Part shown: positions 33,801 to 56,009 of the stretch, in pieces
Layout: every line of letters begins with the position of its first letter
Position numbering within the stretch: the first letter of the stretch is position 1
NCBI RefSeq assembly: GCF_011386835.1
Contig: NC_088810.1
Location: 1,612,001 to 1,676,000, forward strand
DNA length: 64,000 nt
Source of the DNA: Chrysemys picta bellii
Lineage: Eukaryota
Direction: 5' to 3'
Translations under genes and position numbers: made by a program
The notes under the pieces: generated by a model
The model's input: only the letters and a program-made list of their open reading frames with translations
Told to the model about the DNA's origin: nothing
Databases searched by the model: none

Positions 33801-34739
33801 CTTCTATCTAGGGGCTGGGCTGGGAGTCCTGACTTGTGCCCTGGGGACGAAGTCCATATGGCCAAGACTATAAACAATGACGTCACTTCTTCCCACCCAC
33901 CCCCTTCTTTAACCCCTTGTATCCGCATCTGGGGCGCTGAACTGCTCCCTGGGTTTCTAACCCTCTCCCACCTGGGCTGCCTGGCAGGGGCACATGTCCA
34001 GAGGAAAGGGCAGGCAGGTGAAGGGTTAATCTCAGCTGCTTCTTTGGCAAAGGGCAGAGACCAGCCCGACAGTCAAAGTCCTTGTGGACTGCGCCCGCCC
34101 TGCTCTAACCACTAGATCTCACTCCCCTCCCAGAGCCGGGGACAGAACCCAGGTGTCCTGGCTCCCAGCCCCCTCTGCTCTAATCCACCAGCCCCCGCTC
34201 CCCGGGGATAGAACCCAGGAGTCCTGGCTCCCAGCCCCCCTGCTCTAACCACTAGATCCCACTCCCCTCCCAGAGCTGGGGAGAGAACCCAGGTGTCCTG
34301 GCTCCCAGCCCCCCCTGCTCTAACCACTAGATCTCACTCCCCTCCCAGAGCCGGGGACAGAACCCAGGAGTCCTGGCTCCCAGCCCCCTCTGCTCTAATC
34401 CACCAACTCCCGCTCCCCTCCCAGAGCCGGGGAGAGAACCCAGGAGTCCTGGCTCCAACACCCTCTCCCCCCCGCTCTCTTTCCACTAGGTGATGCGGCC
34501 TCCCCTATAGTTGGTATTTGGAGGGTTAATAAGATGAACGGGAAATGAAACTACCAGGCCGGGAGCTGTCCTGCAGAATGGACCAATCAGGATAGGATGT
34601 GTATGGGGGATTGTGGCCTTCATTTGCATATTTAAAGGGGTCTTGATCTGTGGGTGTGGGCCCAGCGTTATACCCTCTTCCATGTGTTTGCTAATGTTCT
34701 TGGAAGACCCTTCAATAACAAACCAGTGCAACTAACAGG

Positions 34740-35451: not shown

Positions 35452-38400
35452 ATGTGGCTGTCCCGGAGCTGCGCGGCCGCGGCCGCTGCCCGGCGGGCCC
35501 TGCCCCTGCGACCCTACTGCACCCGCCGCGCCCAGCGCCAGGGGCTGCTCTTCCGGCAGGTGAGCCGGGCCCGGACTCCTGGGTTCTCTCCCCGGCTCGG
35601 GGAGGGGAGTGGGGTCTAGGGGCTCAGAGCAGGGGGGGCTGGGAGTCAGGACTCCTGGGTTCTCGCCCCTGCTCTGGGAGGGGAGTGGGGGCTGGTGGTT
35701 AGAGCAGGGGGGGCTGGGAGCCAGGACTCCTGGGTTCTCTCCCCGGCTCGGGGAGGGGAGTGGGGGCTGGTGGTTAGAGCAGGGGGGGCTGGGAGCCAGG
35801 ACTCCTGGGTTCTCTCCCCGGCTCGGGGAGGGGAGTGGGGGCTGGTGGTTAGAGCAGGGGGGGCTGGGAGCCAGGACTCCTGGGTTCTCTCCCCGGCTCG
35901 GGGAGGGGAGTGGGGGCTGGTGGTTAGAGCAGGGGGGGCTGGGAGCCAGGACTCCTGGGTTCTCTCCCCGGCTCGGGGAGGGGAGTGGGGGCTGGTGGTT
36001 AGAGCAGGGGGGGCTGGGAGCCAGGACTCCTGGGTTCTCTCCCCGGCTCGGGGAGGGGAGTGGGGGCTGGTGGTTAGAGCAGGGGGGGCTGGGAGCCAGG
36101 ACTCCTGGGTTCTCTCCCCGGCTCTGGGAGGGGAGTGGCGGCTGGTGGTGAGAGCAGGGGGGCTGTGAGCCAGGACTCCTGGGTTCTCTCCCCAGAAGGA
36201 CATGCTCTGGCAGTCAGGAAAGTCCAGCCCTCCTTATTGCTGGTCTGATCTGATCCTGGTGCTGTAACTTCCCCGCCCTCCTACAGGACTTCTGGCTTCC
36301 TGTCCGCTCCCAGGCCAGCTGATCGCTGGTTTCCCATCCCAGGCCAGGCGGGTGGCAGGCCTGTCACCTGGCTGCCTTGGCATCGAGCCCTCAAACGGCA
36401 GCCCTTGGCGGGGAGCCTGGAGCTGGGAATGACTGATGGGGAAGGAGGGGCAGGAGGGATAGCACCCGAACCATGGGTAGAACCCAGGAGTCCTGGCTCC
36501 CTCCTCCCCCGCCGGTGCTCACTGGATCTCCCCTCCACAGCTCTTTGAGCCCGTGAGCTGCACCTACACCTACCTGCTCGCGGACCTGAAGACCAAGGAG
36601 GCGGTTCTGATCGACCCGGTTCTGGAGACGGCCAAGCGGGACGCGGAGCTGGTGAGGGAGCTGGGCCTCAACTTACTGTATGCAGGTGAGAGCAGCTCCC
36701 AGGGGGTCGGGATGGGGACAGTCTCGTTGTGGAAGGGAATGGGGTCACTCAGGGCCTTTCCCCTGTAGGGGGCACCGGCCCCGATCCGGCCCCAGAGCAG
36801 GGACTGGCTGGCTCGGCGGGTGGAGAACGGGGCCTTTCCCCTCTAGGGGGCACCAGCCCCGATCCAGCCCCAGAGCAGGGACTGACTGGCGCGGGGGATG
36901 GAGAACGGGGCCTTTCCCCTCTAGGGGCACTGGCCCCGATCCGGCCCCAGAGCAGGGACTGGCTGGCTTGGCAGGGCGGGAACAGGTCGGGTTCCCGTCT
37001 GTAAATCCCTGGTTCTGCTCCTCGCAGCCAACACCCACTGCCACGCCGACCACATCACGGGCACCGGGCTGCTGAAGAAGATGCTGCCCGGCTGCCACAG
37101 CGTGATCTCCCGGGACAGCGGGGCCTTGGCCGACATCCTCATCCGCGAGGGCCACGCCCTGGAATTCGGGGCCTTCGTAAGTCACCTGGGCACTGGGGCT
37201 GGGACCCCGGACTCCTGGGTTCTCTCCCGGCTCTGGGAGGGCTGGGGGAGGGGGGGGTGTCTCGTGATTAGAGCGTGTGAGTGAGGGGGAGGGGTGTATT
37301 GGGAGCTCAGACTCCTGGGTTTCTCCCCAGCCCTGGGAGCTGAGTGGGGTCAGAACAAGGGAGTTGTGAGCCAGGACTCCTGGGTTCTCTCCCCGGCTCT
37401 GGGAGGGGAGTGGGGTCTAGTGGGTCAGAGCAGGGTGGGTGGGGAGCCAGGACTCCTGGGTTCTCTCCCCGGCTCTGGGAGGGGAGTGGGGTCTAGTGGT
37501 TAGAACAGGGGGGATCCTGGGAGCCAGGATTCCTGGATCCCATGGAGGGTCATGTCGCTGACTCCCCCTGTCTGTAGGCCCTGGAAGCCCGCTCCACCCC
37601 CGGACACACGGACGGCTGCCTGACCTACGTGCTCAGGGACAGGACCATGGCCTTCACCGGGGACGCCCTGCTGATCCGGGGCTGCGGCCGCACCGACTTC
37701 CAGCAGGGTGAGGGCGAGCTGGGGTGGGGTGGGGGGTTTCTTGGAGGGGTAGTGAATGGTTACCCTGGGGACAGGAGGGTGCATCCCTTGGATATGATGG
37801 TGGCTGCCATGGCGATGGTGACAACCGCTGGGCATGACCTGGAAGTGCCATGGTGAGGTGTGTGTGTGTTTGGGGGGGTGTTATCTGTAGGACATGCATG
37901 GTGATTGCCATGGGGATGGAGGGAGCATCTCTGGGTTCACCTCCTAGTCGCCATCGCCCTGGGGAACATGGCTGCTGGTTGCCATGGTGACGGCAGTGGG
38001 TGCTGGGGCGATGATGGGGGTGCCATGCCAGGGAGCTTTGGCCAGGCAGTTGCAGGGGATGCTGGGGTACCATGCCAGGGGATTGGCTGCATCTCCCACT
38101 GTGTGGTAACCAGGCCCCACTTCTCTCCACCCCCCAGGCTCCCCGGAGACCCTGTACCGCTCCGTGCACGAGAAAATCTTCACGCTCCCCGGAGAGTGTC
38201 TGATCTACCCCGCCCACGACTACACGGGTGAGTCCGAGCGCGGCGCTAGGGGGCGCTGTGCTCCAGGGAGCTGGGTGGGGGCTCCCTCTGCTGGTGCTGT
38301 ATCTCACCCGCCCCCTGGCGCCCCCTGCAGGCCAGACGGTGTCGACAGTGGAGGAAGAGAGGACCCTGAACCCCCGACTGACCCAGAGCTGCGAGGTCTT

Positions 38401-38683
38401 TGTCCAGCTGATGAACAACTTGAACCTTCCTCAACCCCAACAAATTGGTGAGGCTGGGAGCCCGGACGCCTGGGTTCTCTCCTGAGGCTGGGAGGGGAGT
38501 GGGGGTCTAGTGGTTAGAGCGGGGGGGTGGGGAGGATAGGTTTTATCCCAGCTGAGGGCCGGCGTGGGGTGTAGCCGAGGCCGGGGCCCCATCGCTCTGA
38601 CTAACGTGTCTGTTTTTTCATCCTCTGCAGATTTTGCTGTCCCAGCGAACCTCAAGTGTGGGATACAGGATGCAGCAACTTAG
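35452..38683 (+). CDS. ETHE1: Persulfide dioxygenase ETHE1, mitochondrial (copy A), 7 exons, 263 aa
   Basis: Exons 35452-35559, 36541-36685, 37028-37176, 37578-37707, 38138-38227, 38331-38447, 38631-38683; open frame, GT-AG introns. Motifs [39 protein letters not shown] and NLKCG. Arg/Ala-rich presequence [29 protein letters not shown] at 35399; AATAAA at 39349. Confidence 0.97.
35570..36195 (+). repeat. 72-bp minisatellite, about 8.5 near-identical copies, ETHE1-A intron 1
   Basis: Unit gtggttagagcagggggggctgggagccaggactcctgggttctctccccggctcggggaggggagtgggggctg. Confidence 0.92.
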
Positions 38684-39401
38684 CCTCGCCCTCTTTCTCC
38701 AATGCCACGCCCCTCGTGTTAAGCCGCACCCACCTCATCATAGGCCACACCCTCTCATTGACCCTTATGATGATGGAAGGTCCTTTGGCCTGGGGCTGGC
38801 TGTCCCTGACTCTCACTTGGGTCCCCCCCCTTAAGCAAAATGTGGGGCCTCCCTCTTTGGGGTCCTGAGTGGGAGGGCGCATCCCTTAAGTGGGGAGGGG
38901 GTTAATGATCTTCAACCATGGCAGCTTCCCTTCCCCCGCTGCAAAGTCCCCATCAATTCCTCTGACCGCCCCCCAGTTTGGCGTTAGGGAGTTTGCACCT
39001 TCCTCTGCATTCACTGTGGGGTGGGAGCATCCCATGAGCCTCCCCAGGGGAGCAAAGCCCCCCCCCCCATTCCCTGAGCCTGGTGTGCAGACAGCGGGGA
39101 ACCCCGGCAGCCGGCATTGGGGTGTGAGAGAGGCCCCAGGCCCCTGTAGCCTGCATTTGAATGACAGGGTACCTGCTTCCTACCCACTCTGTTTGCACTA
39201 GCTGGACTGTCTCCGTCTCTGCTCCGCGGGGCGTCAGCACCTCCCGGCCTAGAGCTGGGAGCGGGGCTCCCACTCTGGGCAGGGAGCCCTGTCTGTGAAT
39301 GTGACTTAATCGTGGGTGGGGGGTTTGGAAATGAACCGCTGCCGAGAGAATAAAGTTGTGTTGGACCTATTGGAATCGAGTGTGCCTCCGAAGGCGGTTA
39401 C

Positions 39402-39416
39402 CCACCAGAGGGCGCT
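39402..39416 (+). promoter_or_regulatory. CTCF-like site downstream of the ETHE1-A poly(A) signal
   Basis: CCACCAGAGGGCGCT matches the CTCF core consensus. Confidence 0.55.
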
Positions 39417-40933
39417 GCTCCCTCACATTTCCCAGCCTGTTCCCTGGATTTGCTCTCCCCCCCATATAGCCCAGGGGGCCCAGACCCCCTCGCCTCCCGC
39501 CCCAGGAACAGCAGCAGGAGCCTGCCCGTGGTCTTGGCCCAGAGAAAGGGCAAGAGGGAAGGAGAATCGGCTTCCATCCCTTTCCCCGACTCTCCAGAGC
39601 TGAACTCGCCCCCCACCCTTCCTCTTGGCGTGATAGTTTCCTTTTCCTTTCCTTCCTCTCCAGGGAGGGGTAAGCCCTGGCCAGAGCCCCCACTGCTTGA
39701 AAAAGGGAACCCCCCACCCCTCAGTCTGTTCCCACCCACCCTGACCCCTGCAAACAGGCCCAGCCAGCCGGACACCACCCCAGAGCCAGGCGCAATGCTG
39801 GCGGGGCTCCGTCCCAGCTGGAGTGGGAAAGGTCTTTCTGCCTGGTGAACTCCATGGGGCTGGGATAGAGCCAGCCCCAGACACCCCCTCCAATAAGGGG
39901 TGCTGCCCCTTTAAGGCTGCAGCCCTGGCAGAAAGGAATTGTGGGAGATGTAGTCCCAGGGTTGATGGGTGTTGTAAGCTGGGCAGCGAGGCATGCTGGG
40001 AAGGAACCAGGCCTATAAAAGAGCTCCCTTCTCAGCTACCAAGAGGGGGGTCTGGGTAAATAAGGGGGGTGGACACCTTAGCCAGCCAGCAGCTGTGAGA
40101 CACTCCTTGGGCAATTGTGCACCATTGCGCATATGCAGAATTTGGGTCCCCCCCAGATTTTTTTTCTTTCCCTGCAGAATATGAGATTCGGCTGGGGAAG
40201 GAACGCGAGGGGCCATGCGCTCTTCCCCGGCAGCAGGCGTGCTGGGAGCAGCCGGGGGGATGTAAATCACCACCGGGGCTGGGCGTGCGTGCCAGACTGT
40301 CCCTCTCGCTCGCTCTTGCAGTGTGCCCGCTGCAGAGAAGCAGGCCCTTCTGCTGTGTCGGGTGCACTGCTGCGTCTGTGTCGGGGGGCTGCAGGGTGAT
40401 CCCCCCAACCTCTGTGCAGCCAGGGGCCTGTGCTCCCCATTGGGAGGCAGCCCCCATGTGCACCCCTTGTCCATGTCACTGCGCCTAACCTGCAGAGGCG
40501 TGGGGCTGACCCAAGCAGCTGTGGGGAAGCCATGGGGAGCCTTGGCCAGGGCTGCCATTTCAGAAGGGTGGGGGGCACCTATTTCCCCCCCCCCCCGAGT
40601 TCCTGTCCCTTTCTGCTCCTGGGGATCATCTGTGTCGTTACAGACAGACTTGCTGACAGGGATTTTGCAATAAATTACCAAAATAGTTGAAAGTGAGGGG
40701 ATGAGATGGGATTATTCTGACAAAATGCACAGTGGGTTACAACGTTGTCCGCAGAACTTTTTGGATTTTTGGCGCAGAATTCCCCCCGGAGTAGGGAGCC
40801 TGGCACCATCTCCCCGAGCTGCCCCAGCAGCGGTCTCTGCGGTTGCGTCCAGCCCTGGATCTCAAAGCAATTAACACAGGTTAATTGTGGACCCTGACAA
40901 ACCTTTCCATCCCTGGGGAAACCTTTCCAACCC

Positions 40934-41370
40934 TGTGATGAACTGGGACTGTTTTTACTGTGGTCTTTGAATGCTGACAGGGGAGTGTGGCTAGGATAGT
41001 CTGCATTGGGGGATGGGAGACTGACCGATGGTGAATACCTGAGCATGTAACATGAGAACTCAGGAAGGGGTTAGAGGCCAGGTGACACCTTGGCCCGGGA
41101 AACTGAACAAAGGCTAGAGGGAGTTTCGGAGCTGGCTGGTGACATGGCTGGGAGGCAGATGGGGCTCTGACCTCCCAAGGGGGCTGGGGCGCCCTGGGAC
41201 CCCAAGATGGACCTAACTGAAGGGATCCTGTTGTCTGTGCCTGCAAGACCTGTCTTGGACTGTATTCCTGTTGTCTAAATAAACCTTCTGCTTTACTGGC
41301 TGGCTGAGAGTCATAGTGAATCGCAGGAAGCCGGGGGGACAGGCCCTTGTGTCCCCCCACACTCGCGACA
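40934..41370 (+). mobile_element. Probable solo LTR in the 3' flank of copy A only
   Basis: TGTGA...GACA termini, internal AATAAA (~41278); absent from the paralogous flank at ~54200-54250. Confidence 0.6.
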
Positions 41371-42089
41371 CCCTATTATACAGGGAGGGAAACTGAGGCA
41401 GAAAGAGGGAAAATCTGTGCAGGACAGCTGGGGATAGAACCCAGTAGCCCTGAGTCCTCCTGCTCTAACTATTAGACTCCTTTCCCCTCCCAGAACTGGG
41501 ATAGAACCCAGGAGTCCTGGCTCCCAGTGGCCCCTGCTCTAACCACTAAACCCCACTCTCCTCCCAGAGCCAGGGATAGACCCCAGGAGTCCTGGCTCCC
41601 AGCCCCACCTGCTCTAACCTACTAGACCCTACTCCCCTCCCAGAGCTGAGGAGAGAACCCAGGAGTTCTTGCTCCCAGGCCCCCCTGCCCTGTGAAATCC
41701 AGGGTGTGGCCAATTCTCCAGTCCCCACCCACCTGCCCCATGGTTATACCAGGCCCACAGGTGTGTTGGGATGAGGGTATATGATGCCAGAACCCCATAT
41801 CCCATAGAAGGACCCTGAGCAGGGGAAGGGGACAGGGCTCTTTGGGTGCAGGGTGGCTGACCTAGTGAAATGGGCTTTAACCACTGTTCAGTGCCCAGAG
41901 GCCAGACATCCCAGTGAATAACCCCAGTTACGACAGAAGGTGCATCACAATGACTTGACAGGTTAAGTCCCATGACTGCAATAGGGGTACAGAAGGGCAC
42001 AGTTTACTCAGGGACAAAGGGCGGAGCGGTTGCCTTGCATAGCAAAGGTGTCTGCACCCGCTCTGAGGCTGAGCTGGGACTAGGAGACA

Positions 42090-44540
42090 GACTTCTTGAA
42101 AGTCTCTGTTAGGGATAAAAGGGGTAAAAACCAGGTGGGGGGCCATGGTAGGGGCGGCTCCAGACCAGCTAACCGGGAAGAAGAGGTGGAGGATGCTTTT
42201 CTTAAACAACTCTCACAATCATCCACAGCCCAGGACGTGGTGATGCCGGGGGATTTCAACCACCCAGGGATCGGTTGGGAAAATATCCCAGCCGGGCACA
42301 GATCTTGGAATGCAGTGGAGACAGCTTTGGCGAAAGCCGCGAGGGGGAGGCGGTTCTGGATTTGGTTGTGCCCCAAAGGGAGGCACTGGTTGAGACGCTG
42401 AAGGTGGAAGGCAGCTTGGGTGAAAGGGATCGGGAAATGACAGCGCTCGCGCTGCTAAGGAAACAGCACGGATCAGCCAATGGATGGGACAGGCCCGTTA
42501 CTCGGTGAGGAGGGAAAGCCAGGAACAGAAAACGAAGCGATGGCTGAAGTGTTAAATGCCTTTTTTGTTTCCGTTTTCATCAGCCGACTACCCTAGTGAA
42601 TGTCAGCGGACACGGGGCAGGACCCAAGGCTACAACAGGCAAAGAGCGAGTTAAGAATGACTTAGCTAAGTTCCATGTCTTCAAGTCGGCAGGGCCTGAT
42701 GCCGTCTCACACGACCGTCTCATACACAAACCAGAGAAATCCAGTGGTTGGAAAACCGCTCCCAGGGAGCAGTGATCAGTGGTTCGCAGTCAGGTTGGAA
42801 GGATCCCTTGAGTGGATCTGGATCCCTTGGAGGGATCTGTCCTGGGTCGGGTTCTGTTCAGTGATTTGGATAATGGCACGGAGAACGCACTCTTAAAGTC
42901 TGAGGACAATACCAAGCTGGGAGGGGTTGCAAGCTGTCACGGACTCCCAGCCCCCAGGCTCTCTCGGCTCCCTACGGCCCCTGGGACGAACCCCCCAGTG
43001 TGACAGCCCTTCTCGGGGTCACGATCTCTCATGGGGGTTAAGCCCTAGGCACCAGCGCCTCCTGGGACCGCACCTCTCTGAGCCCCCAGCAGCCTGGCTC
43101 TGCCGTGGGCCCCCTCAGGGAGTCCCCTCGCTCTGGCCCCCGGGGCCCCCACCCCCAGAGGGAGGAACGCCCCCCGATCTCTAGCTGCAGTGACTACCAG
43201 CATCACACAGGAGGTTTATTGAGCATCTGGACCCAGCCCAGGCAGTTCTCAGGGCCCTCGGGCCTGGCCAGTCTCAGCCCCGGCCAGTTGGGTCTGTCCA
43301 GTCCCCATGGGTCCGGCTGCTCCTTGTCCCCAGCCCAGCCCCACCCAGCCCCCTCCTTCCAGCCCAGCCCCCTAAATCCCCTCCCCCACCTGCCCCTCCT
43401 CCGCCCTTTGTCTTCGGTCCCAGGTGAATAGGCTGCTGGTCCCCTCTCTTCTGTCCTTTGTTCTCCCCAGTCTGGTCAGGTCCCCGGGCCCCTCTCTCCT
43501 CAGCCCAGTGGCTCCCCACTGGCCAGAACCGGCTGGCTCCCAATCTCCAGGCTGGTGTCTGGGGTCCCGGCTGCAAGGCAAGGTCACACCTGGTCCCCTG
43601 CAACCACAAACCCCCTCCTACCCCCGTGTTATGTATGCAGCACAGAGGGAAACTGAGGCACACACCATGTTCATGCAAAACACTAAGAAAACCCCCCACT
43701 TCATCACACTAGTGCTTTGGAGGACAGGAGTAAGATTCAAACTGAACTGGACAAACTGGAGAAATGGTCTGATGTAAATAGGATGAAATTCAATCAGGAC
43801 AAATGCAAAGTGCTTCACTTCGGAAGGAACAATCAGTTGCACACACACAGAATGGGAAATGGCCGCCTAGGAAGGAGAACTGTGGAACGGGAGCTGGGCT
43901 CAGAGTGGATCACAAGCTAAAAGTGAGTCACCAGTGCGATGATGTGGCAAAACCAGAGGCCGTTCTTCTGGGATGTCTCAGCAGGAGTGTTGTAAGCAAA
44001 GCAAGACACCAGAAGTGATTCTTCAGCTCTACTCCGCGCTGATGACGTCTCACCTGGAGTCTCGCGTCCGGTTCTGGGCGCCGCACGCGGGGAAAGATGT
44101 GGGCAAATCGGAGAGAGTCCAGGGAAGCGCAACAAAAACGATTAACGGTCTAGAAACCATGGCCTAGGAGGGCAGATTGAAATTAGTCGGGAGAAGAGAA
44201 GACGGAGGCAGGGGGACGACATAACAGTCTTTAAGTACAAGGTTACGAGGAGGGTGACGGATGGTTCTTGTGCACTGCGGCCAGGACAAGGAGCAATGGG
44301 CTTGAACGTCAGCAAGGGAGGTTTAGGTTTAGGTTGGACGTTAGGAAAAACTTCCTACCTGTCAGGGTGGTGAAGCACTGGGGTAAATCGCCCAGGGAGG
44401 TTGTGGAATCGCCATCACTGGAGGTTTTGAAGAACAGGTGGGACAAACCCCGGCCGGGGGTAATACCTAGCCCTGCCTCGGTGCAGGGGACTGGCCTGGA
44501 CGGCCGAGCAAGGTCCCTTCCAGGCTGACATGTCTATGAG
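42090..44540 (+). mobile_element. Degenerate CR1 LINE (endonuclease, RT fragments and 3' end), interrupted by an LTR-like insert
   Basis: DAFLKQL...GDFNHP, LDLVV, GSVLGRVLFSDLDNG...DNTKLGG, QTELDKLEKWSDVNRMKFNQDKCKVLHFG, RTRSNGL...[10 protein letters not shown]. Confidence 0.9.
42935..43708 (-). mobile_element. Probable solo LTR inserted in the CR1
   Basis: TGTCA...TCACA termini; the CR1 sequence ggttgcaag / tgctttggaggacagg resumes on either side; antisense AATAAA at ~43214. Confidence 0.6.
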
Positions 44541-44776
44541 TGTCTGATTTCGCCCCCCCCCCCCCGAGCCGAACCAGCCAGTCGCCCACCTGGAGGAGGA
44601 TCGGAGCCGGCACCCTCTAGAGGAGAAGGCCCCTGTGCCCAGAGAAAGGCTCCTGGGGGGCAGGTGCCCGGAGTGGGTGGCAAAGGTAGCTTGGGGGCTG
44701 GGGAGGGTTTTGTGGCTCTGCGTGGATCCCCCACCCGCTGCGTGTCTCCCTGAACATCCACCTCCATTGAAATTAA

Positions 44777-44899
44777 TGGCTGACCAGATGTCCCGATTTT
44801 ATAGGGACCGTCTCGATTTTGGGGTCTTGTTCTTATATAGGCTCCTATTAACCCCCAGCCCCCGTCCCGATTTTTCACACTTGCTGTCTGGTCACCCTA
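44777..44899. mobile_element. Short hAT MITE (TAGGGTGACCAGA family)
   Basis: tggctgaccagatgtcccg...gtctggtcacccta, flanked by an aaattaa duplication. Confidence 0.7.
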
Positions 44900-45990
44900 A
44901 AATTAACTGCCCCCCCCCCCCCCGGGGGGTGGGAGCCAACCCATTCCCTGGCTTGCAATGACCAGCCAAGGCAAGGAAACAGACTCAAAGACGGGAAAGG
45001 ACCTGCCTGAACTGGAGATAGAACCCAGGAATCCTGGCTCCGCCCCCACCCCCTTTCCCTTCCCTTCCCAGAGCCAGGGAGAGAACCCAGGAGTCCGGGC
45101 TCCCCCCACCCCAACCCATTACCTCTCCCCAGCCAACTCAGCTGCTTCCTGAGAAGCAAAAACCCCCCCAGGATTAGGACGCAGGGGAGCCTAGAGAGCT
45201 GGCGCGGCTGGAGGGGCCCCTGGCCGGCCGGTGACCAGGGCTTCCTTAGCAAGACAGGGGGACTCTGTTGGGGGACAGGGGGTCCCCGAGAAGGCAGGTG
45301 AGAGAATCCTGCTTCCCACGACTGTCACTACCCAAAAGGGCTGACAGGGCAGAGTTCAGTGGTACTACCCCGCAAGGGAAAAGGAGGGAGCCTGGACACC
45401 TGGGTTCTCTCTCTGGCTCTGGGAGGGGAGAGGGGTTAGAGCAGGGGGGGCTGGGAGCCAGGACGCCTGGGTTCTCTCTCTGGCTCTGGGAGGGGAGAGG
45501 GGTTAGAGCAGGGGGCTGGGAGCCAGGACGCCTGGGTTCTCTCTCTGGCTCTGAGGGGGGAGAGGAGTCAGAGCAGGGGGGGGCTGGGAGCCAGTATGCC
45601 TGGTTCTCTCTCTGGCTCTGAGGGGGGAGAGGGGTCAGAGCAGGGGAGCTGGGAACCAGGACGCCTGGGGTTCTCTCTCTGGCTCTGGGAGGGGAGAGGG
45701 GTCAGAGCAGGGGGCGCTGGGAGCCAGGACGCCTGGGTTCTCTCTCTGGCTCTGGGAGGGGAGAGCGGTCAGAGCAGGGGGGGCTGGGAGCCAGGACGCC
45801 TGGGTTCTCTAGACATGAGCGCATACCATGCAGTTCCATTGCCTGTTGGGTCCTCGGGGGCCAGTCCCGGGGGCGTGACGTGATCTTTCCCTCCTGGCTG
45901 CGCCATGGTTACCAAGCCCGTGAGGGCACCGCGGGGGGTGGGGGGATGATTTTGGGCCCCTGGGAGCAGGCTGGGAATGTGCCGTGGCAA

Positions 45991-46114
45991 TAGGGTGACC
46001 AGATGTCCTGATTTTATAGGGACAGTCCCGATATTTGGGGCTTTTTCTTACATAGGTTCCTATTACCCCCCCCCCCCCGCCCCGATTTTTCACACTTGCT
46101 GTCTGGTCACCCTA
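45991..46114. mobile_element. Short hAT MITE (124 bp)
   Basis: TIRs TAGGGTGACCAGA / TCTGGTCACCCTA; 8-bp TSD cgtggcaa / catggcaa. Confidence 0.85.
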
Positions 46115-46274
46115 CATGGCAATAACACGGCTGGGAGCAGGGTTGGGGAGACAGAGCCCTTGGGTGTGAAGAGATGGTAACGCCTGCTGGGCTGTCAGAG
46201 GTGATTATATCTGGGAGGGAGAGATTTGCCAACTGTCAACTGATGCCAGGGTGGAGGGGGGAGGGAAAGGAATA

Positions 46275-47040
46275 GAACCCAGGAGTCCTGGCTCCCAGCC
46301 CCCTGCTCTAACCACTAGACCCCACTCCCCTCCCAGAGCCAGGGAGAGAACCCAGGAGTCCTGGCTCCCAGCCCCCTGCTCTAACCACTAGACCCCACTC
46401 CCCTCCCAGAGCCAGGGAGAGAACCCAGGAGTCCTGGCTCCCAGCACCCTGCTCTAACCACTAGACCCCACTCCTCTCCCAGAGCCAGGGAGAGAACCCA
46501 GGAGTCCTGGCTCCCAGCCCCCTGCTCTAACCACTAGACCCCACTCCCCTCCCAGAGCCAGGGAGAGAACCCAGGAGTCCTGGCTCCCAGCGCCCCGCTC
46601 TAACCACTAGACCCCACTCCCCTCCCAGAGCCATGGAGAGAACCCAGGAGTCCTGGCTCCCAGCGCCCCGCTCTAACCACTAGACCCCACTCCTCTCCCA
46701 GAGCCATGGAGAGAACCCAGGAGTCCTGGCTCCCAGCGCCCCGCTCTAACCACTAGACCCCACTCCTCTCCCAGAGCCATGGAGAGAACCCAGGAGTCCT
46801 GGCTCCCAGCGCCCCGCTCTAACCACTAGACCCCACTCCTCTCCCAGAGCCATGGAGAGAACCCAGGAGTCCTGGCTCCCAGCGCCCCGCTCTAACCACT
46901 AGACCCCACTCCTCTCCCAGAGCCATGGAGAGAACCCAGGAGTCCTGGCTCCCAGCGCCCTGCTCTAACCACTAGACCCCATTCCTCTCCCAGAGCCAGG
47001 GAGAGAACCCAGGAGTCCTGGCTCCCAGCCCCGCCCCCCA
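46275..47040 (-). repeat. ~69-bp minisatellite, about 11 copies, immediately upstream of ETHE1-B
   Basis: Unit agaacccaggagtcctggctcccagcgccccgctctaaccactagaccccactcctctcccagagccatggag. Confidence 0.92.
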
Positions 47041-47181
47041 GCTCCAACCACTTTAAGATCCAACCTGCCCTGTCCTCCCTGCCTCCGCCTCCTTCCTCCC
47101 TCCCGCCCCCACCGTCTGGCATTTAAAGGACTCACCCCCCGGCCTGGCACCAGTGCATCCAGCCTCCTGCGCGCCCCGGCC

Positions 47182-50100
47182 ATGACCCTGAGACCGTACT
47201 GCACCTGCCGTGGCCAGGGCGAGGGGCTGCTCTTCCGGCAGGTGAGCTCCGGGCACGGGGGCTGCGAGCCAGGACTCCTGGGTTCTATCCCTGGTTCTGG
47301 GAGGGGAGTGGGATCTAGTGGTTAGAGCAGAGAGGGCTGGGAGCCAGGACACCTGGATTATCTCCCTGGCTCGGGGGGGGGGGGAGTGGGGTTTAGGGGT
47401 TAGAGTGAGGCGGGTTGGGAGCCCGGACGCCTGGGTTCTATCCCTGGCTCTGGGAGGAGAGAGGGGTCTGGTGGTGGAAGATGGGTCCCGGACTCCTGAG
47501 TTTTCTCTGTGGGGCTTTGGGAGGGGAGTGGGGTCTAGTGGTGAGAGCTGGGTTCTCTAGACATGAGCGCATACCGTGCAGTTCCATTGCTTGTTGGGTC
47601 CCCAGGGGCCTGACGCGATTATTCCCTCCTGGCTGCGCCGTGGTTACCTGGCCTGTGTGGGCTCCAGGGGGATGCTGGGAGCCCAATAACACAGCTGGGT
47701 GCCGAGCTGGGACGATGGAGCTGCTGGGTAACTCCTGCTGGGCTGATTATATCTGGGAGGGGGAGATTTACCAACCGGCAACTGATGCCATGATGGAGAG
47801 GGGGAGGGAAAGGAATAGAACCCAGGCGTCCTGGCTCCCAGCCTCCCCCCCACTCCAACTACTAGACCCCACTCCCCGCCAGTGCTCACTGGATCTCCCC
47901 TCCACAGCTCTTTGAGCCCGTGAGCTGCACCTACACCTACCTGCTCGCGGACCTGAAGACCAAGGAGGCGGTTCTGATCGACCCGGTTCTGGAGACGGCC
48001 AAGCGGGACGCGGAGCTGGTGAGGGAGCTGGGCCTCAACTTACTGTATGCAGGTGAGAGCAGCTCCCAGGGGGTCTGGATGGGGACAGTCTCGTTGTGGA
48101 AGGGAATGGGGTCAGGGCCTTTCCCCTGTAGGGGGCACAGGCCCCGATCCGGCCCCAGGGCAGGGACTGGCTGGCTAGGCGGGTGGAGAACGGGGAACGG
48201 GGCCTTTCCCCTCTGGGGGGCACCGGCCCCGAATCGGCCCCAGAGCAGGGACTGGCTGGCGCGGGGAATGGGGAACGGGGCCTTTCCGCTCTAGGAGCAC
48301 CGGCCCCGATCCAGCCCCAGGGCAGGGTCTGGCTGACTCAGGGGATGGAGAATGGGGCCTTTCCCCTCTAGGAGCACCGGCCCCGATCCAGCCCCAGGGC
48401 AGGGACTGGCTGGCTCGGCAGGGCGGGAACAGGTCGGGTTCCCGTCTGTAAATCCCTGGTTCTGCTCCGCGCAGCCAACACCCACTGCCACGCCGACCAC
48501 ATCACGGGCACCGGGCTGCTGAAGAAGATGCTGCCCGGCTGCCGCAGCGTGATCTCCCGGGACAGTGGGGCCTTGGCCGACATCCTCATCCACGAGGGCC
48601 ACGCCCTGGAATTCGGGGCCTTCGTAAGTCACCTGGGCACTGGGGCTGGGAGCCCGGACTCCTGGGTTCTCTCCCCGGCTCTGGGAGGGCCGGGGGGGGG
48701 GTCTAGTGATTAGAGCGTGTTTGGCAGGGGAGGGGGCGCTGGGAGCCAGGACTCCTGGGAGGGCAGGGGGTCTAGTGGTTAGAGTGGTGGGGAGGTGGGG
48801 GGAAGGGGAAGTTGGGAGCCCGGACTCCTGGGTTTCTCCCCAGCACTGGGAGCTGAGTGGGGTCAGAACAGGGGAGTTCTCTCCCCGGCTCTGGGAGGGC
48901 AGGTGGGGGGTCTAATGATTAGAGCGTGTTTGGCGGGGGTGGGGGCGCTGAGAGCCAGGACTCCTGGGTCCCATGGAGGGTCATGTCGCTGGCTCCCCGT
49001 GTCTGCAGGCCCTGGAAGCCCGCTCCACCCCCGGACACACGGACGGCTGCCTGACCTACGTGCTCAGTGACAGGACCATGGCCTTCACCGGGGACGCCCT
49101 GCTGATCCGGGGCTGCGGCCGCACCGACTTCCAGCAGGGTGAGGGCGAGCTGGGGTGGGATGGGATGGGGGAGTATGTGTTACCGGGGGGAGGGGTAGTG
49201 AATGGTTACCGTGGAGACAAGATATGGGATATGATGGTGGCCGCCATGGCGATGGGGGACATCTCCAGGTCATGCCCAGCAGTTGCCACAGCGATGAGGA
49301 ACATGGCTGCTGGTTGCCAAGGCGATGGCAGGGTGTGTCTCTGGGGCTCAGCCAGTGGGTGCTGTGGGGATGGTGGGGGTGCCCTGCCAGGGGGTTCGGC
49401 CAGAGGGCGTTGGGGGTGCTGTGCTGGGGGTATGGCAAGAGGGAGCTGGGGTTCCCATGGGGCACTGGGGGGGATGGTGGGGGTGCCCTGCCAGGGGGTT
49501 CGGCCAGAGGGCGTTGGGGGTGCTGTGCTGGGGGGTATGGCAAGAGGGAGCTGGGGTTCCCATGGGGCACTGGAGGGGATGTCGGGGGTGCCATGCCAGG
49601 GGATTGGCTGTGTTCCCCACCCCGTGGTAACCAGGCCCCACTTCTCTCTGCCCCCCAGGCTCCCCGGAGACCCTGTACCGCTCCGTGCACGAGAAAATCT
49701 TCACGCTCCCCGGAGACTGTCTGATCTACCCCGCCCACGACTACACGGGTGAGTCCGAGCGCGGCGCTAGGGGGCGCTGTGCCGCGGGGGGCGGGGGGAG
49801 CTCTCCTGGGCAGGACGGGTGCAAGGATGTTTCGCGCCCTAGGCAAAACTTCCACCTTGCGCCCTCCCCCCTCCCCGAGCCCTCCGGCAGCTCCCTGCTC
49901 CCCCTGCCCTGAGGTGCCCCCCCCCGTGGGAGCTTCCCACCCCCCTCCACCCTGAGGCGCCCCCCCCGTGGCAGCTCCCCATCCCAGCTCACCTCTGCTC
50001 CGCCCCCTCCCCGAGCCCTGCGGCACCTCCCCACCCCCCTCTGCCCTGAGGCGCCCCCCCCCCCGCCCCGCAGCAGCTCCCCCCCACCCCAGGTCACCTC

Positions 50101-51626
50101 TGCTCCGTCCCCTCCCCGAGCCCTGCGTCAGCTCCCCAACCCCCCCTCCACCCTGAGGCACCCCCCCCCGCGGCAGCTCCCGCCCCCGCCCTGAGGCACC
50201 CCGCCTGTGGCAGCTCCCCACCCCCCACTCCACCCAGAGACGCCCCCCCGTGGCTGCTCCCTCCCCCCCGGGGAGCCGTGCGGCAGCTCCCCGCCTCCTC
50301 CCCGAACAGGCCGCCCTCGCTCTAATTCTCCTCCCCTCCCAGGCTCTCGGCGCCAATCAGCTGTTTGGCACCACAAGCCTGGGAGGGAGAGAAGCAGAGC
50401 GGGCGGCGCGCTCAGGGGAGGATGCGGAGCAGAGGTGAGCTGGGGCGGGGAGTTCCCCTGCGTGCCGCCCCCCCCCCCTACTTGCTGCAGGCGGCCCTCC
50501 CCACATCCCCTGCCCCAGCTCCCTCCGCCGAAATGCCGCCGACGACTGGGGTCGCTGCCGAAGAAAATGCCACCCCCCAAATGCTAGCGCCTTAGCCGAC
50601 CGTCTAGGTCGCCTAATGGGTTGCACCGGCCCTGCTCCTGGGGCAGTCAGGGCTGGCCCCGATGCCCCAGCCCGGCGCTAGGGGGCGCTGTGCTCCAGGG
50701 ACCCCCCCCCCCCCCACTGGTGCTGTATCTCACCCGCCCCCTGGCACCCCCTGCAGGCCAGACGGTGTCCACGGTGGAGGAAGAGAGGACCCTGAACCCC
50801 CGACTGACCCAGAGCTGTGAGGCCTTTGTCCAGCTGATGAACAACTTGAACCTGCCTCAGCCCAAGAAAATTGGTGAGGCTGGGAGCCCGGATGCCTGGG
50901 TTATCTCCCAGGGCTGGGAGGGAGGAGGGTTGGTGGGTTAGAGCAGGGGGGGCTGGGAGCCAGGATGCCTGGGTTCTCTCCTGGGGCTGGGAGGAAGGAG
51001 GGTTGGTGGGTTAGAGCAGGGGGGACTGGGAGCCCAGAGACCTGGGTTCTTTCTCTCCTGGGGCTGGGAGGGAGGAGGGTTGGTGGGTTAGAGCAGGGGG
51101 GGCTGGGAGCCAGGATGCCTGGGTTCTCTCCTGGGACTGGGAGGAAGGAGGGTTGGTGGGTTAGAGCAGGGGGGGCTGGGAGCCCAGAGACCTGGGTTCT
51201 CTCCTGGGGCTGGGAGGGAGGAGGGTTGGTGGGTTAGAGCAGCTGGGAGCCAGGAGTCCTGGGTTCTTTCCCTGGGCAAGGAGGGTTGGTGGGTTAGAGC
51301 AGCGGGGGACAGCGAGCCAGGACGCCTGGGTTCTCTCGCCAGCTCTGGGAGGGGAGTGGGGTCTGGTGGGTTACAGTGGGGGGGGGCTGGGAGCCAGGAC
51401 ACCTGGGTTCTCTCCTGGGCTGGAAGGGAGGAGAGTTGGTGTGTTAGAGCAGTGGGGGGCTGGGAGCCAGGACTCCTGGGTTCTGTTCCCAGCTGTGGGC
51501 CGTGGAAGGTGTAGACGAGGCCAGGACCCCTATCACTCTGTCTAACACTTGTCTCTTCTTCTGTCCTTTGCAGATATCGCTGTCCCGGCAAACCTGAAGT
51601 GCGGGATCCAGGATGTGGAGACTTAG
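47182..51626 (+). CDS. ETHE1: Persulfide dioxygenase ETHE1 paralog (copy B), 7 exons, 247 aa, truncated N-terminal presequence
   Basis: Exons 47182-47241, 47908-48052, 48475-48623, 49009-49138, 49659-49748, 50757-50873, 51574-51626; open frame, GT-AG introns, all metal-binding and substrate motifs retained. N-terminus [26 protein letters not shown] at 47122; AATAAA at 52363. Confidence 0.93.
49811..50634. mobile_element. hAT non-autonomous element in ETHE1-B intron 5
   Basis: TIRs CAGGACGGGTGCAA / TTGCACCGGCCCTG; perfect 8-bp TSD CTCCTGGG (49803-10 and 50635-42); absent from copy A. Confidence 0.88.
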
Positions 51627-52404
51627 CCCCACCCTCTTTACTCCAAGGCCACACCCCTCACAACAAGCCCCTCCCACCTCCACATAGGCCATGGCCTCTC
51701 ATTGACCCTTACTAGGATGGAAGGTCCTTTGGCCTGGGGGCTGGGGGGGGGGGCTGTCCCTGACTCTCACTCCAGTCCCCACCTTTAAAGGAAAGCTGGG
51801 ACCTCGGTGGGACTGTGCATCCATTAATGGGGGCAGTTAATGATCATCGACCGTTGCAGGTTCCCTTCCCCCCCCGCCAGCGCCCCCATTCCTCTGACAA
51901 CCCCAGTCTGGCATTAGGGAGTCTGCACCTTCCTCTGCATTGGCTGTCATGTGGGGGTGTCCTGCTGGCCTCCCCTGGGAAGCAAAGCCACCCCCCTCTT
52001 CTCTGAGCTTGGAGTGCGGATAGCAGGGGACCCCAGCCTGCGCTGAGGTCCGAGAGAGACCCTCAACCCCCCATGCCCTGTGTTTGAATAGTGGGGTGCC
52101 CTGTGGGAACCCCACTTGGTTCGGTTAGGTCCCTCCCTCACCCTGCAGCTGAATGGGGGGGAACCCCCACTCCCAGGGGCTCTGGGTTAGTGCTGTTTGC
52201 ACTAGCTAGACTTTCCCCATCTCTGCCCCCGGGTCTCGGGCGAGCCTGGCCCTGGACTCCCCGCTCCGTCGGGGGCCAGGGGAGGGGAAGGGGGCCCTGT
52301 CTGGGAGCGGGGCTGAACCTCAGCGGGGTTTGGAAACGAGCAGCTGCTGCCGCCGCCAAGAAAATAAAATTCTGTTGGACCCATTTGGACTTGATTTCGC
52401 TTCG

Positions 52405-53295
52405 CAAGGCAGGAGGCCGGGGTAGAGGGGCCCGTGGGGCACGGGCAGGGCGGGAGGCTGGGGTAGAGGGGCCCGGGCGGCTCGGGCAGGGCGGGAGGCC
52501 GGGGTAGAGGGGCCCGTTGGGCACGGGCAGGGCGGGAGGCCGGGGTAGAGGGGCCCGGGCGGCTCGGGCAGGGCGGGAGGCCGGGGTAGAGGGCCCGGGC
52601 GGCTCGGGCAGGGCGGGAGGCCGGGGTAGAGGGGCCCGTGGGGCCCGAGTGGCTCGGGCAGGGCGGGAGGCCGGGGTAGAGGGGCCCGGGCGGCCCGGGC
52701 AGGGCGGGAGGCCGGGGTAGAGGGGCCCGTGGGGCACGGGCAGGGCGGGAGGCCGGGGTAGAGGGGCCCGGGCGGCTCGGGCAGGGCGGGAGGCCGGGGT
52801 AGAGGGGCCCGTTGGGCACGGGCAGGGCGGGAGGCCGGGGTAGAGGGGCCCGGGCGGCCCGGGCAGGGCGGGAGGCCGGGGTAGAGGGGCCCGTTGGGCA
52901 CGGGCAGGGCGGGAGGCCGGGGTAGAGGGGCCCGGGCGGCCCGGGCAGGGCGGGAGGCCGGGGTAGAGGGGCCCGGGCGGCCCGGGCAGGGCGGGAGGCC
53001 GGGGTAGAGGGGCCCGTGGGGCACGGGCAGGGCGGGAGGCCGGGGTAGAGGGGCCCGGGCGGCTCGGGCAGGGCGGGAGGCCGGGGTAGAGGGGCCCGGG
53101 CGGCACGGGCAGGGCGGGAGGCCGGGGTAGAGGGGCCCGGGCGGCTCGGGCAGGGCGGGAGGCCGGGGTAGAGGGGCCCGGGCGGCTCGGGCAGGGCGGG
53201 AGGCCGGGGTAGAGGGGCCCGGGCGGCTCGGGCAGGGCGGGAGGCGGGGTAGAGGGGCCCGGGCGGCTCGGGCAGGGCGGGAGGCAGGGGTAGAG
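52405..53295 (+). repeat. 41-bp G-rich VNTR, about 21 copies
   Basis: Unit gggcagggcgggaggccggggtagaggggcccgggcggctc; gtagag recurs at 41-bp spacing (for example 52504 and 52545). Confidence 0.92.
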
Positions 53296-53363
53296 GGGCT
53301 GAGGTTGCAGGGCAGGACCCCAGGCTGGCTGGGGCCATGGGGCCAGCCTCTTACTGTAGTTTC

Positions 53364-53378
53364 CCACCAGGGGGCGCT
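53364..53378 (+). promoter_or_regulatory. CTCF-like site downstream of ETHE1-B
   Basis: CCACCAGGGGGCGCT; paralogous to 39402-39416. Confidence 0.55.
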
Positions 53379-56009
53379 GCTCCCTCACTCTTTCCCCAGC
53401 CTATTCTCCGGCTTTGCAGCTGGGGGGTCGTGGGTGCTCTCCTCACCCACGCCCGCAGGCCCCCTCGACTCCCCCCTAGGAACAGCCGTGGGCGCCTACA
53501 CGTGGCCTTGGCCCAAAGAACGGTGAGAGGGAAGGAAAATCGGCTTCCATCCCTCCCCGCACCCCACAGAGCCAAACTTTTCCCCCATCCTTCCTACTAG
53601 TTCTTCCCTCTTCCCTTCCCTCCTCTGCACAGCCACAGCATCCCGCTTCAAAAAGGGACCCCCACCCCTCGGTCTGTCCCCACCCACCCTGACCACCGCA
53701 AACAGGCCCAGCCAGCCGGACACCACCCCAGAGCCAGGCGCAATGCTGGCGGGGCTCCGTCCCAGCTGGAGTGGGAAAGGTCTTTCTGCCTGGTGAACTC
53801 CATGGGGCTGGGATAGAGCCAGCCCCAGACACCCCCTCCAATAAGGGGTGCTGCCCCTTTAAGGCTACAGCCCTGGCAGAAAGGAATTGTGGGTGATGTA
53901 GTCCCCAGGGTTGTAGGCTGGGCAGTGAGGCATGCTGGGAAGGGGGCAGGGCTATAAAAGGGCTCCTTTTGCTGTTACCTAGCAAGAGGAGGGGTTGTGC
54001 AGAGATTGAGGGAGTTTTCTGGGGCTCCCTGCCTTGCTCTGTGGGGTTCCTCAGGCAGCCAGGGGCTGAGAGGGCAGCACTAGTGACCCCAATGGCTCTG
54101 GCTTGGGGTGGGGAGACAGCTGATTGCAGGATTCTCTGCTGGTGCTTTCAGCCCAGGATCTCAAAGCAATTAATGGGGGTTAATTAGTTGAGCCTCATAA
54201 ACTCTTTTGCCCTGGGGAGTGGAGTCAGGATCCTCATTCCTGTTACACAGTGAGGGAAACTGAGGCATGGAGGTGGGACATCTGGGCAGGACAGCTGCCA
54301 CCATCCCCCACTGCTCAAACCCACTAGATCCCACTCCTCTCCCAGAGATAGGAGAGAACCCAGGAGTCCTCGCTCCCAGGCCCCACTACTCTAGCTACTA
54401 GACCCCACTCCCCTCCCAGAGCCAGGGAGAGAACCCAGAAGTCCTGTCTCCCAGCCTGCTACTGGCCTATGCTGACTGTTCCCACATGAACGCTGGAATC
54501 CCACAGGCCAATGGTGGATTTGAACAAGCCCCTGGGGCCCCCGCTCGTGGGCCTGTCAGCTAGGGAAGGGGTAGGGGGAAGACAGAGGTCTGGGGCCAAT
54601 TAACCCTTCAATGGCTGCCTGCCCTGCCCCCTCTGCTCCCCTGCGCTGACCTCCAGGGAGCAGCTCTCCTTATCAGGGCCTGTGAACTTTGCACCCAGCT
54701 CTGGGGTGTTTTGGGGCCGTTACTTAGGTCCAGCCGGTCTGGTGACAGAGCGGCTGGGGGATGTACGGAGAGAAGGGATAGCCCTGAACAAGGGGGGCTG
54801 GCTGGCTCTGGGGGGTGTGGGACCCTTCCCCTATAGGGGGGTTGGCTCCCATCTGTGCCCAAGGTGAGAACTGGCTGGTTCCAGGGGGGCAGAGCGTGGG
54901 GTCACGGGGCCTTTCGAATTAACCCTTTTTTTTTAAACTGTTTCTGGTTTTCAAACCCGACCTGCTGCAGCGCCCTGCCCGGCTCTCGTGGGAACAAAGT
55001 TCCCAAGGGAAACTCCCGCCAGGTAAATTTGGGTGTCAGCCGGCAGGACTCAGCCTGTCTCAATCTGCCAGGCCCGGGGGAGACAAACTGGTTTCTCTTA
55101 CGGATGTCGGACTCCTCCCTGGGAGCCTTGTCCCAGAGCCAAGGATGGAACCCAGGAGTCCTGGCTCCCAGCCCCCCCTGTAGTTAACTCCTGCCTAGCA
55201 GGGGAAGAGTCACCCCACTCCCTGGGGTGGAGTGATCAACCTGCTCCTAGGCAGGGAAACTGAGGCACAGACTGGTGAAAGAACCTGTCCAGTCTGAGTC
55301 CTGGCTCCCACCCCCCCGCTCTAACCACCAGCCCCCACTTGCCTCCCAGAGCCTCAGAGATGGATGGGTCTGAGTTCTTGGCCCAGGGGTGGTTACATAA
55401 GGGCAGAAAGTCCCAGCCCAGACCTCGTGCAGGGCTCTGGCTCTCGGTTTAACTGCTCAACTTCCCCTGCTTGTGACCCGCACCCGGCCTGCCTCGGAGG
55501 GGGGCTGGGAGCCAGGACGCCTGGGTTCTCTCCCCGGCTCTGGGAGGGGAACGGGGGCTGGTGGTTAGAGCAGGGGGCTGGGAACCAGGACTCCTGGGTT
55601 CTCTCCCTAGCTCTGGGAGGGGAGTGGGGGCTGGTGGTTAGAGCAGGGGGCTGGGAGCCGGGACGCCTGGGTTCTCTCCCCAGCTCTGGGAGGGGAGTGG
55701 GGGCTAGTGGTTAGAGGAGGGGGGCTGGGAGCCAGGACTCCTGGGTTCTCTCCCCGGCTCTGGGAGGGGAGTGGGGGCTGGTGGTTAGAGCAGAGGGGCT
55801 GGGAGCCAGGACTCCTGGGTTCTCTCCCTGGCTCTGGGAGGGGAGTGGGGGCTGGTGGTTAGAGCAGGGGGGCTGGGAGCCAGGACGCCTGGGTTCTCGG
55901 GCTGTGGCTGGCCCTGACGTGCCCTCCCCTCCCGGGCGCTGATGTCACAGGTGGTGTGTTTCCAAGCTCGGGCTGGAAAACGAGTTTGAGCAGCCGCTGC
56001 CACCCCCCC

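Follow-up and report, generated by a model that had tools for sequence, protein, structure and literature searches.

The 64-kb stretch of the Chrysemys picta bellii genome analyzed here (contig NC_088810.1, positions 1,612,001 to 1,676,000; hereafter the window) carries, in tandem on the forward strand, two intact genes for the sulfide-detoxifying enzyme ETHE1, ETHE1-A at window positions 35452-38683 and ETHE1-B at 47182-51626, with a spacing of 11.4 kb and located downstream of XRCC1 (Table 1). Each gene consists of seven exons with AG/GT at every internal splice site, both reading frames are open (263 and 247 amino acids), and a tblastn search across the whole window revealed no third ETHE1 copy. 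The ETHE1-B model corresponds letter for letter to the RefSeq protein P0125, annotated in the same species as "persulfide dioxygenase ETHE1 isoform X1". P0125 matched the structure of human ETHE1 (4CHL) with E = 1.5e-119 over residues 16-244; this comparison was made with P0125 and thus with ETHE1-B, to which ETHE1-A is tied by only 5 base differences across exons 2-5. A word search with exon 4 returned proteins 100% identical to this exon that carry PF00753 (Lactamase_B), and the motifs HCHADH, TPGHT, FTGDALL and PAHDY, which we take from the human enzyme to be metal ligands, are present in the translations of both genes. Judging from their sequences, both are functional-looking persulfide dioxygenase genes of the metallo-beta-lactamase fold. 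Human ETHE1 is a persulfide dioxygenase of the mitochondrial matrix, encoded by a single-copy gene of seven exons. Both turtle copies share this exon layout and the HCHADH, PGH and TGD motifs with it. Unlike humans, turtles have two genes, and ETHE1-B starts 16 residues later than ETHE1-A and has a C-terminal tail of its own.

The two copies form a mosaic of near-identical and strongly diverged segments. No difference was found among the 145 nt of exon 2, and only few in exon 3 (3/149), exon 4 (1/130) and exon 5 (1/90), compared to 9/117 in exon 6 and 11/53 in exon 7 (Fisher p = 5e-9 for this contrast over all bases). The same contrast was seen at silent sites. Synonymous divergence (dS) was 0.008 in exons 2-5, with a single synonymous difference over 130 synonymous sites, and 0.49 in exons 6-7, with 14 synonymous differences over 39 sites (Fisher p = 1.9e-9); in exons 6-7 the ratio of nonsynonymous to synonymous divergence (dN/dS) was 0.10, and exon 7 alone reached a saturated dS of 1.65. 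In a two-sequence run-length test, the longest difference-free coding run, 214 nt, was equaled in 361 of 200000 permutations.

To map the identity along the genes we used exon-anchored MAFFT alignments with a 50-column identity profile, together with BLAST blocks that were filtered for colinearity, since the unfiltered blastn dot plot was swamped by a 73-78-bp repeat. The identity turned out to be concentrated in separate islands. Island 1 spans ∼730 bp and includes an identical run of 194 nt; its 50-column windows are 90-100% identical, and its BLAST block reaches 93% when indels are included. Intron 2, which lies within this island, is 95% identical, with 321 matches, 17 mismatches and three indels, one of which is a 77-nt repeat unit. 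This intron has a 77-78-bp tandem repeat of its own (A, 36752-36972, 2.8 copies; B, 48102-48415, 4.0 copies), the copy number of which is the only notable length difference inside the tract. Island 2 covers exon 4 with ∼50 nt on its 5' side and 21 nt on its 3' side, has windows of 92-100% identity with identical runs of 61 and 91 nt, and shows no synonymous difference. Island 3 comprises exon 5 with ∼8 nt on its 5' side and 34 nt on its 3' side, shows one difference in 132 nt and stops exactly at the point where an 890-bp insertion lies in intron 5 of ETHE1-B. Island 4 is of intermediate identity, with windows of 98% and 96%. A maximum chi-square break in third codon positions was placed at coding nt 609, that is, at exon 6 offset 95; consistently, the 3' border of identity lies ∼20 nt before the end of exon 6, and 5 differences between the copies are concentrated at exon 6 offsets 98-111.

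Homogenization is thus not confined to coding sequence but reaches 34 nt into intron 1, through intron 2 and ∼58 nt into intron 3. In the stretches that separate the islands, identity falls to 44-88% in the central parts of introns 3 and 4 where these can be aligned. When the central parts of introns 4 and 6 were aligned globally, identity was 44-66%, which is near unalignable, and these values were used only as an indication that the segments are not homogenized; the alignable parts of introns 1, 4 and 6 are 66-68% identical. The divergence of introns 3 and 4 between the islands led us to reject a single long tract running from exon 2 to exon 5.

An earlier note on this DNA, made from the letters of the sequence and here called the original prediction, had described much of this pattern from hand counts. 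Its counts of differences for all six exons from 2 to 7 were reproduced exactly by our recount, and its description of exon 1 as indel-rearranged agrees with lengths of 108 nt in A and 60 nt in B, due to a ∼48-nt deletion in B. It had the high-identity tract begin near the end of intron 1, and we place this border 34 nt before exon 2; the 26-mer that it quoted stands immediately before exon 2 in both copies (36515-36540 and 47882-47907). More diverged flanks with independent insertions were likewise found, the 3' flank blocks being 74-79% identical and B carrying insertions of its own. The statement that identity fades after exon 5 needed revision: the 3' end is indeed diverged, but the identity is distributed over several islands and its 3' border lies inside exon 6.

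Since identity in islands 2 and 3 is centered on exons, we considered whether exons alone might have been homogenized through an RNA or cDNA template, such as repair from a spliced transcript. In favor of this, exons 4 and 5 are 99% identical, and upstream of them the first mismatch is met after only 3 and 8-9 nt, respectively. Intron 2, however, was homogenized along with exons 2 and 3, and identity begins 34 nt ahead of exon 2 and continues for 21 and 34 nt beyond the donors of exons 4 and 5, respectively. Because identity passes the splice sites and spans a whole intron, a spliced-RNA template is unlikely, and ordinary short tracts seeded in the best-conserved stretches would explain the islands without any special mechanism. 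We give this alternative little credence.

Even less can be said for an explanation without any conversion, in which the core would be alike through strong purifying selection on the enzyme while the ends were free to change. The core is certainly conserved across vertebrates; exon 4 is 86-100% identical from fishes to mammals among the matches listed. Nevertheless, protein-level selection does not hold silent sites, and because these show the same contrast between core and ends, it is unable to explain that contrast. In exons 4-5, none of 56 synonymous sites differed, compared to 69 mismatches (17%) in 400 columns of the adjoining introns (p = 8.6e-5; 100 aligned intron columns on each side of each exon). 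Moreover, 4 of the 5 core differences are replacements (H/R, R/H, R/S and E/D, at 37097, 37637 and 38196 in A and 48592 in B), giving a dN/dS of 1.36 for the homogenized core, a value derived from very few events, and the 95% identity of intron 2 also argues against this explanation. Compared to Emys and Terrapene A, three of these replacements look derived in A and one in B.

We further compared the two copies across turtles, using a protein set obtained by a word search with exon 4 followed by collection of the members of the resulting clusters. Full pairs of A (∼263 amino acids) and B (247 amino acids) were found in Chelonia, Lepidochelys, Natator, Caretta, Mauremys, Pelodiscus and Carettochelys, and partial pairs in Pangshura, Eretmochelys and the pleurodire Emydura. 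The B-type exon 1 (MTLRP.CTCR.QGQ.LLFRQ) and the B-type tail were present in all cryptodire lineages sampled, namely, emydids, geoemydids, sea turtles, softshells and Carettochelys. Since the side-necked Emydura also carries the B-type exon 1, along with the B-type Lys residues of exon 2, the duplication apparently predates crown turtles. A word-based search with the first 40 residues of B matched the B-type start in turtles only.

Within exons 2-5, replacements that are specific to a lineage are common to both of its copies. Examples are DRQTKEAIL, KASGALADVHIHEG, NDQSM and CLVYP in Carettochelys, LLKT and ILLREG in sea turtles and AKDSGASADIHIQEG in Pelodiscus. Over five independent turtle lineages, 23 columns of the core were concerted in this way and 1 was orthologous (7 and 1 in exon 2, 11 and 0 in exon 3, 4 and 0 in exon 4, and 1 and 0 in exon 5), compared to 3 and 3 in exon 6 and 0 and 3 in exon 7. 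Purifying selection on the enzyme would not place such replacements in both copies of a lineage, which further lowers its standing as an explanation. Consistently, the tree of the core follows lineages, with A and B grouped together in Carettochelys (support 98/94) and in sea turtles (91/88), the sea-turtle clade holding A and B subclades inside. Enforcing a B clade on the core was 73.5 log-likelihood units worse and was rejected by the approximately unbiased (AU) test (p = 3.5e-5). In contrast, exons 6+7 separated A from B with 94/95 support and one label change, and an "ends" partition combining exons 6-7 with the alignable tail of exon 1 split A from B with 100/100. The original prediction had expected exons 2-5 to group by species and exons 1, 6 and 7 by paralog; at the protein level this is what the trees give, with the core following lineages and the ends following paralogs. 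Its central proposal of an old duplication with homogenized catalytic exons and paralog-specific ends is thus borne out by the column counts, the AU test and the A|B split of exons 6+7.

Grouping of the core by lineage would also be expected if the gene had duplicated independently in each turtle lineage, or recently in this one, with the ends acquired secondarily, but we see hardly any room for this, given the B-type exon 1 and tail common to emydids, geoemydids, sea turtles, softshells and Carettochelys (the exon 1 also to a pleurodire), the A and B ends forming two groups with 94-100% support, the saturated dS of exon 7 and the flanks of only 74-79% identity.

We thus favor, with a rough probability of 0.85, an ancient tandem ETHE1 pair the core of which has undergone repeated nonreciprocal interlocus gene conversion while its ends were spared. 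From the observed gene models, identity mosaic, silent-site contrast and cross-species protein pattern, we infer the following course of events. The gene would have duplicated before the split of side-necked and hidden-necked turtles, and A and B would since then have exchanged sequence recurrently, a break in the DNA of one copy being repaired from the other copy. Short tracts of roughly 130-800 bp would have fallen on exons 2-5 and the 5' four-fifths of exon 6, carrying intron 2 along. As a result, silent and replacement sites of the core would be near identical within a species and different between turtle lineages. Conversion would not have reached exon 1, the final ∼7 codons of exon 6, exon 7 or the flanks, which keep an A type and a B type, each conserved across turtles. 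The reason why the ends were spared may lie in selection against exchanged ends, in homology lost to the insertions in introns 1, 5 and 6, or in a combination of the two. By its sequence pattern, the process appears to be textbook concerted evolution by interlocus conversion, in a gene pair that is ancient and turtle-wide.

The direction of at least one event may be read from exon 2. A Lys at RDA-K-LV is kept by B in sea turtles, softshells, Carettochelys and Emydura, and the second Lys of RDA-K-LV-K is kept by B in sea turtles and Emydura, softshells and Carettochelys keeping the first. The ETHE1-B of the window and Chrysemys B carry the Glu of A at the RDA-K-LV Lys site. Because B has lost these Lys residues and its exon 2 DNA is that of A, at least one A-to-B event probably occurred in the emydid line. 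As for timing, divergence in island 1 is ∼1% for the silent sites of its exons and 5% for intron 2, compared to ∼21-26% mismatches in the unconverted flank, so that the last events would date back only a small fraction of the age of the pair. The GC content at third codon positions is 0.93 in A and 0.92 in B for exons 2-5 and 0.64 and 0.79, respectively, for exons 6-7; the raised value in the core fits GC-biased conversion without proving it.

Several points weigh against the conversion reading. The cross-species evidence is at the protein level only. Several of the proteins from other species are automatic gene models, and some models of the set, such as P0016 and P0148, are clearly chimeric, so that individual rows of the alignment could mix the two copies. 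The "ends" partition was picked after the alignment had been viewed, whereas exons 6+7 are the partition of the original prediction itself. Tandem arrays keep the central parts of introns 3, 4 and 6 from being aligned reliably, and the island borders are therefore approximate. Finally, sequencing reads were available as short Logan contigs (130-390 nt), which end where the paralogs differ and in which variant bubbles have been popped; they collapse near-identical exons and show presence only, with no phasing of the copies. Four runs were compared on B, and in exon 3 none of the four gave the letter of B at either 48566 (T) or 48592 (A).

This last point is also what speaks for an assembly artefact, in which exons 2-5 of one copy would be a collapsed or mispolished consensus of the other and the true difference would be larger. 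Contigs from two samples under the same species label, however, join B-specific intron sequence to exons 4 and 5: runs X1 and X4 yielded contigs with exon 4 and B-specific intron flanks that showed no other letters, and in one X4 contig exon 5, with the B letter, is attached to the B-specific intron 4. At 3 of the 5 core differences, the runs taken together contained both letters. Moreover, intron 2 retains its 17 mismatches and three indels inside the tract, and the same pattern of similar cores and different ends is found in the separately assembled genomes of seven other turtle species. While the Logan contigs by themselves neither confirm nor refute the near-identical exons, we consider an artefact very improbable.

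The contigs showed some further peculiarities. At 48544/48566/48592 in exon 3, the letters G-C-G were found in three of the four runs (another sample with the same species label, a second species and RNA of a third species), a combination that is neither that of A (A-C-G) nor that of B (G-T-A) in the window and that encodes the Arg…Arg form of Emys and Terrapene. An apparent B/A mosaic contig of run X1, which combines the B letter at 48469 with A letters in exon 3, was not taken for a converted allele, since independent bubble popping fits it. In the RNA run X15, spliced contigs of exons 1-2-3 and of exons 4-5 look A-derived, with 9 other letters relative to B in the exon-1 part, and no contig on exon 7 of B was found in this one RNA run.

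Chimeric models were also observed in their own right. In P0016 and P0154 (Chrysemys, Ensembl) and in P0148 (Gopherus, Ensembl), A-type 5' exons are followed either by B-type 3' exons or by sequence read through from B intron 4; these models may be either annotation chimeras arising from the near-identical core or real A-into-B read-through transcripts. In Mauremys mutica, two different B-type proteins, P0145 and P0146, have separate RefSeq accessions on one 29.9-Mb contig, which may point to a third ETHE1 copy in Mauremys.

The ends that escaped homogenization differ in character between the paralogs. The peptide encoded by exon 1 of ETHE1-A has 36 amino acids with 8 Arg, no acidic residue and a net charge of +8, compared to 20 amino acids with 3 Arg, 1 Glu and a net charge of +2 in ETHE1-B. 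The ATG of ETHE1-B aligns with the Leu17 codon of A, the ∼48-nt deletion removing the start of A, and the shared 60 nt of exon 1 show 8 differences. A short N terminus can still be imported into mitochondria. The C-terminal tails differ as well (KK… in B and QQ… in A), and both types of ends are conserved across turtles. The original prediction had suggested that selection may maintain two localizations of the enzyme; what the sequences show in this respect is the shorter and less charged N terminus of B, the conservation of both end types and the dN/dS of 0.10 in exons 6-7. The border in exon 6 was placed alike by silent sites within this genome and by cross-species columns; this shared position fits selection against swapped tails, although the insertions in introns 5 and 6 of B could also block tracts mechanically.

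As a tentative and rather doubtful extension of these observations, ETHE1-B might be a distinct enzyme form acting outside the matrix, as it lacks the full mitochondrial presequence and has its own C-terminal tail. Selection would then have held the conversion borders since before living turtles diverged, while the core would have been free to homogenize, and the pair might represent a turtle-specific extension of sulfide/persulfide handling, possibly tied to tolerance of long anoxia. Two ETHE1 genes with different termini, conserved in an anoxia-tolerant group, thus offer a testable hypothesis on the site of persulfide oxidation in turtle cells.

Interlocus conversion with protected segments is classically known from the primate alpha- and gamma-globin pairs, the red/green opsins and RHD/RHCE. 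The ETHE1 pair resembles these cases in being a direct tandem duplication with short nonreciprocal tracts, in the homogenization of silent sites in part of the gene, in trees that follow species for the converted part and paralogs for the unconverted part, and in the raised GC content of the converted part. Unlike them, the turtle pair has apparently persisted since before crown turtles, and both protein ends, including the presequence exon, are protected. No paper on ETHE1 duplication or conversion, in turtles or otherwise, was found in the literature searched. Conversion can thus disguise a very old duplication as young: taken alone, the whole-gene identity of ∼96% would imply recent copying, but judged by its ends and its distribution among species the pair is older than crown turtles. 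Annotation already yields chimeric A/B models, and therefore ortholog calls, dN/dS scans and dating of turtle ETHE1 would go wrong unless the gene is split into its converted and unconverted parts.

Table 1. Features of the ETHE1 pair and its surroundings (window positions)
Feature	Position	Strand	Remarks
ETHE1-A exons	35452-35559, 36541-36685, 37028-37176, 37578-37707, 38138-38227, 38331-38447, 38631-38683	+	263 codons
ETHE1-A exon 1	35452-35559	+	108 nt, 36 codons; Arg-rich, presequence-like; ATG, GT donor, tblastn
ETHE1-A paralog-specific 3' end	38426-38683	+	last ∼22 nt of exon 6, intron 6, exon 7 including stop
ETHE1-B exons	47182-47241, 47908-48052, 48475-48623, 49009-49138, 49659-49748, 50757-50873, 51574-51626	+	247 codons
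ETHE1-B exon 1	47182-47241	+	60 nt, 20 codons; without the first 16 codons of A
ETHE1-B exon 2	47908-48052	+	identical to A exon 2
ETHE1-B exon 3	48475-48623	+	3 differences from A: 48544, 48566, 48592
ETHE1-B exon 4	49009-49138	+	1 difference from A: 49068
ETHE1-B exon 5	49659-49748	+	1 difference from A: 49717
ETHE1-B exon 6	50757-50873	+	9/117 differences from A
ETHE1-B exon 7 and stop	51574-51626	+	encodes B-type tail; 11/53 differences from A
Island 1 (A)	36507-37234	+	last 34 nt of intron 1, exon 2, intron 2, exon 3, first ∼58 nt of intron 3; partner in B 47874-48682
Island 2 (A)	37525-37728	+	around exon 4; partner in B 48956-49159
Island 3 (A)	38130-38261	+	around exon 5; partner in B 49651-49782
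Island 4 (A)	38291-38425	+	end of intron 5 and first ∼95 nt of exon 6; partner in B 50717-50851
Unconverted 3'-flank block	A 39397-40050 (B 53359-53993)	+	79% identical; background divergence
TATA-like element before ETHE1-A start codon	35395-35406	+	GGCATTTAAAGG; same 12-mer before both genes
TATA-like element before ETHE1-B start codon	47118-47129	+	GGCATTTAAAGG; same 12-mer as before ETHE1-A
Arrays of the 73-78-bp unit	34202-34456, 35569-36193, 37301-37536, 41459-41688, 45386-45810, 46274-47029, 47259-47459, 50878-51484, 55498-55898, 56465-57069	both	
73-bp tandem array enlarging intron 6 of B	50878-51484	+	8.4 copies
890-bp high-copy GC-rich insertion in intron 5 of B	49783-50672	+	contig depth 1e4-1e5

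A TATA-like 12-mer, GGCATTTAAAGG, is identical upstream of both genes at a matching position, 46 to 53 nt before the ATG, and may have a promoter role.

The introns and flanks of both genes carry tandem arrays of a 73-78-bp unit (…GCCAGGACTCCTGGGTTCTCTCCCC…GGTTAGAGC…) on both strands. Since depths of 1e4-3e5 were reached in the public contigs, the unit is evidently a very high-copy element. No Rfam match was found in 31-58 kb, this unit included; our impression is that its GGTTAGAGC and GGGTTC stretches resemble tRNA promoter boxes. On either side of the 890-bp insertion in intron 5 of B lies one copy of a 21-bp direct duplication (49762-49782 and 50673-50693), of which A has a single site at 38241-38261. 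The 5' copy of this site and the 12 nt preceding it match A exactly; no such match is seen for the 12 nt in front of the 3' copy. A 41-bp minisatellite at 52404-53299 (21.7 copies, 92% match) is found in the 3' flank of B only and accounts for most of the extra length of this flank compared to 39162-39397 in A.

Upstream of ETHE1-A, XRCC1-like exons were located by tblastn at 14997-21139 on the forward strand. They were detected via P0004, an XRCC1-ETHE1 fusion model from Platysternon, which is probably an annotation artefact. Between the two ETHE1 genes, the intergenic segment 43783-43970 matches the odd first exon (MKFNQDKCQVLHFGRN…) of the Mauremys models P0006 and P0009 and looks like a fragment of a LINE (long interspersed nuclear element) reverse transcriptase that was mistaken for an exon by annotation.

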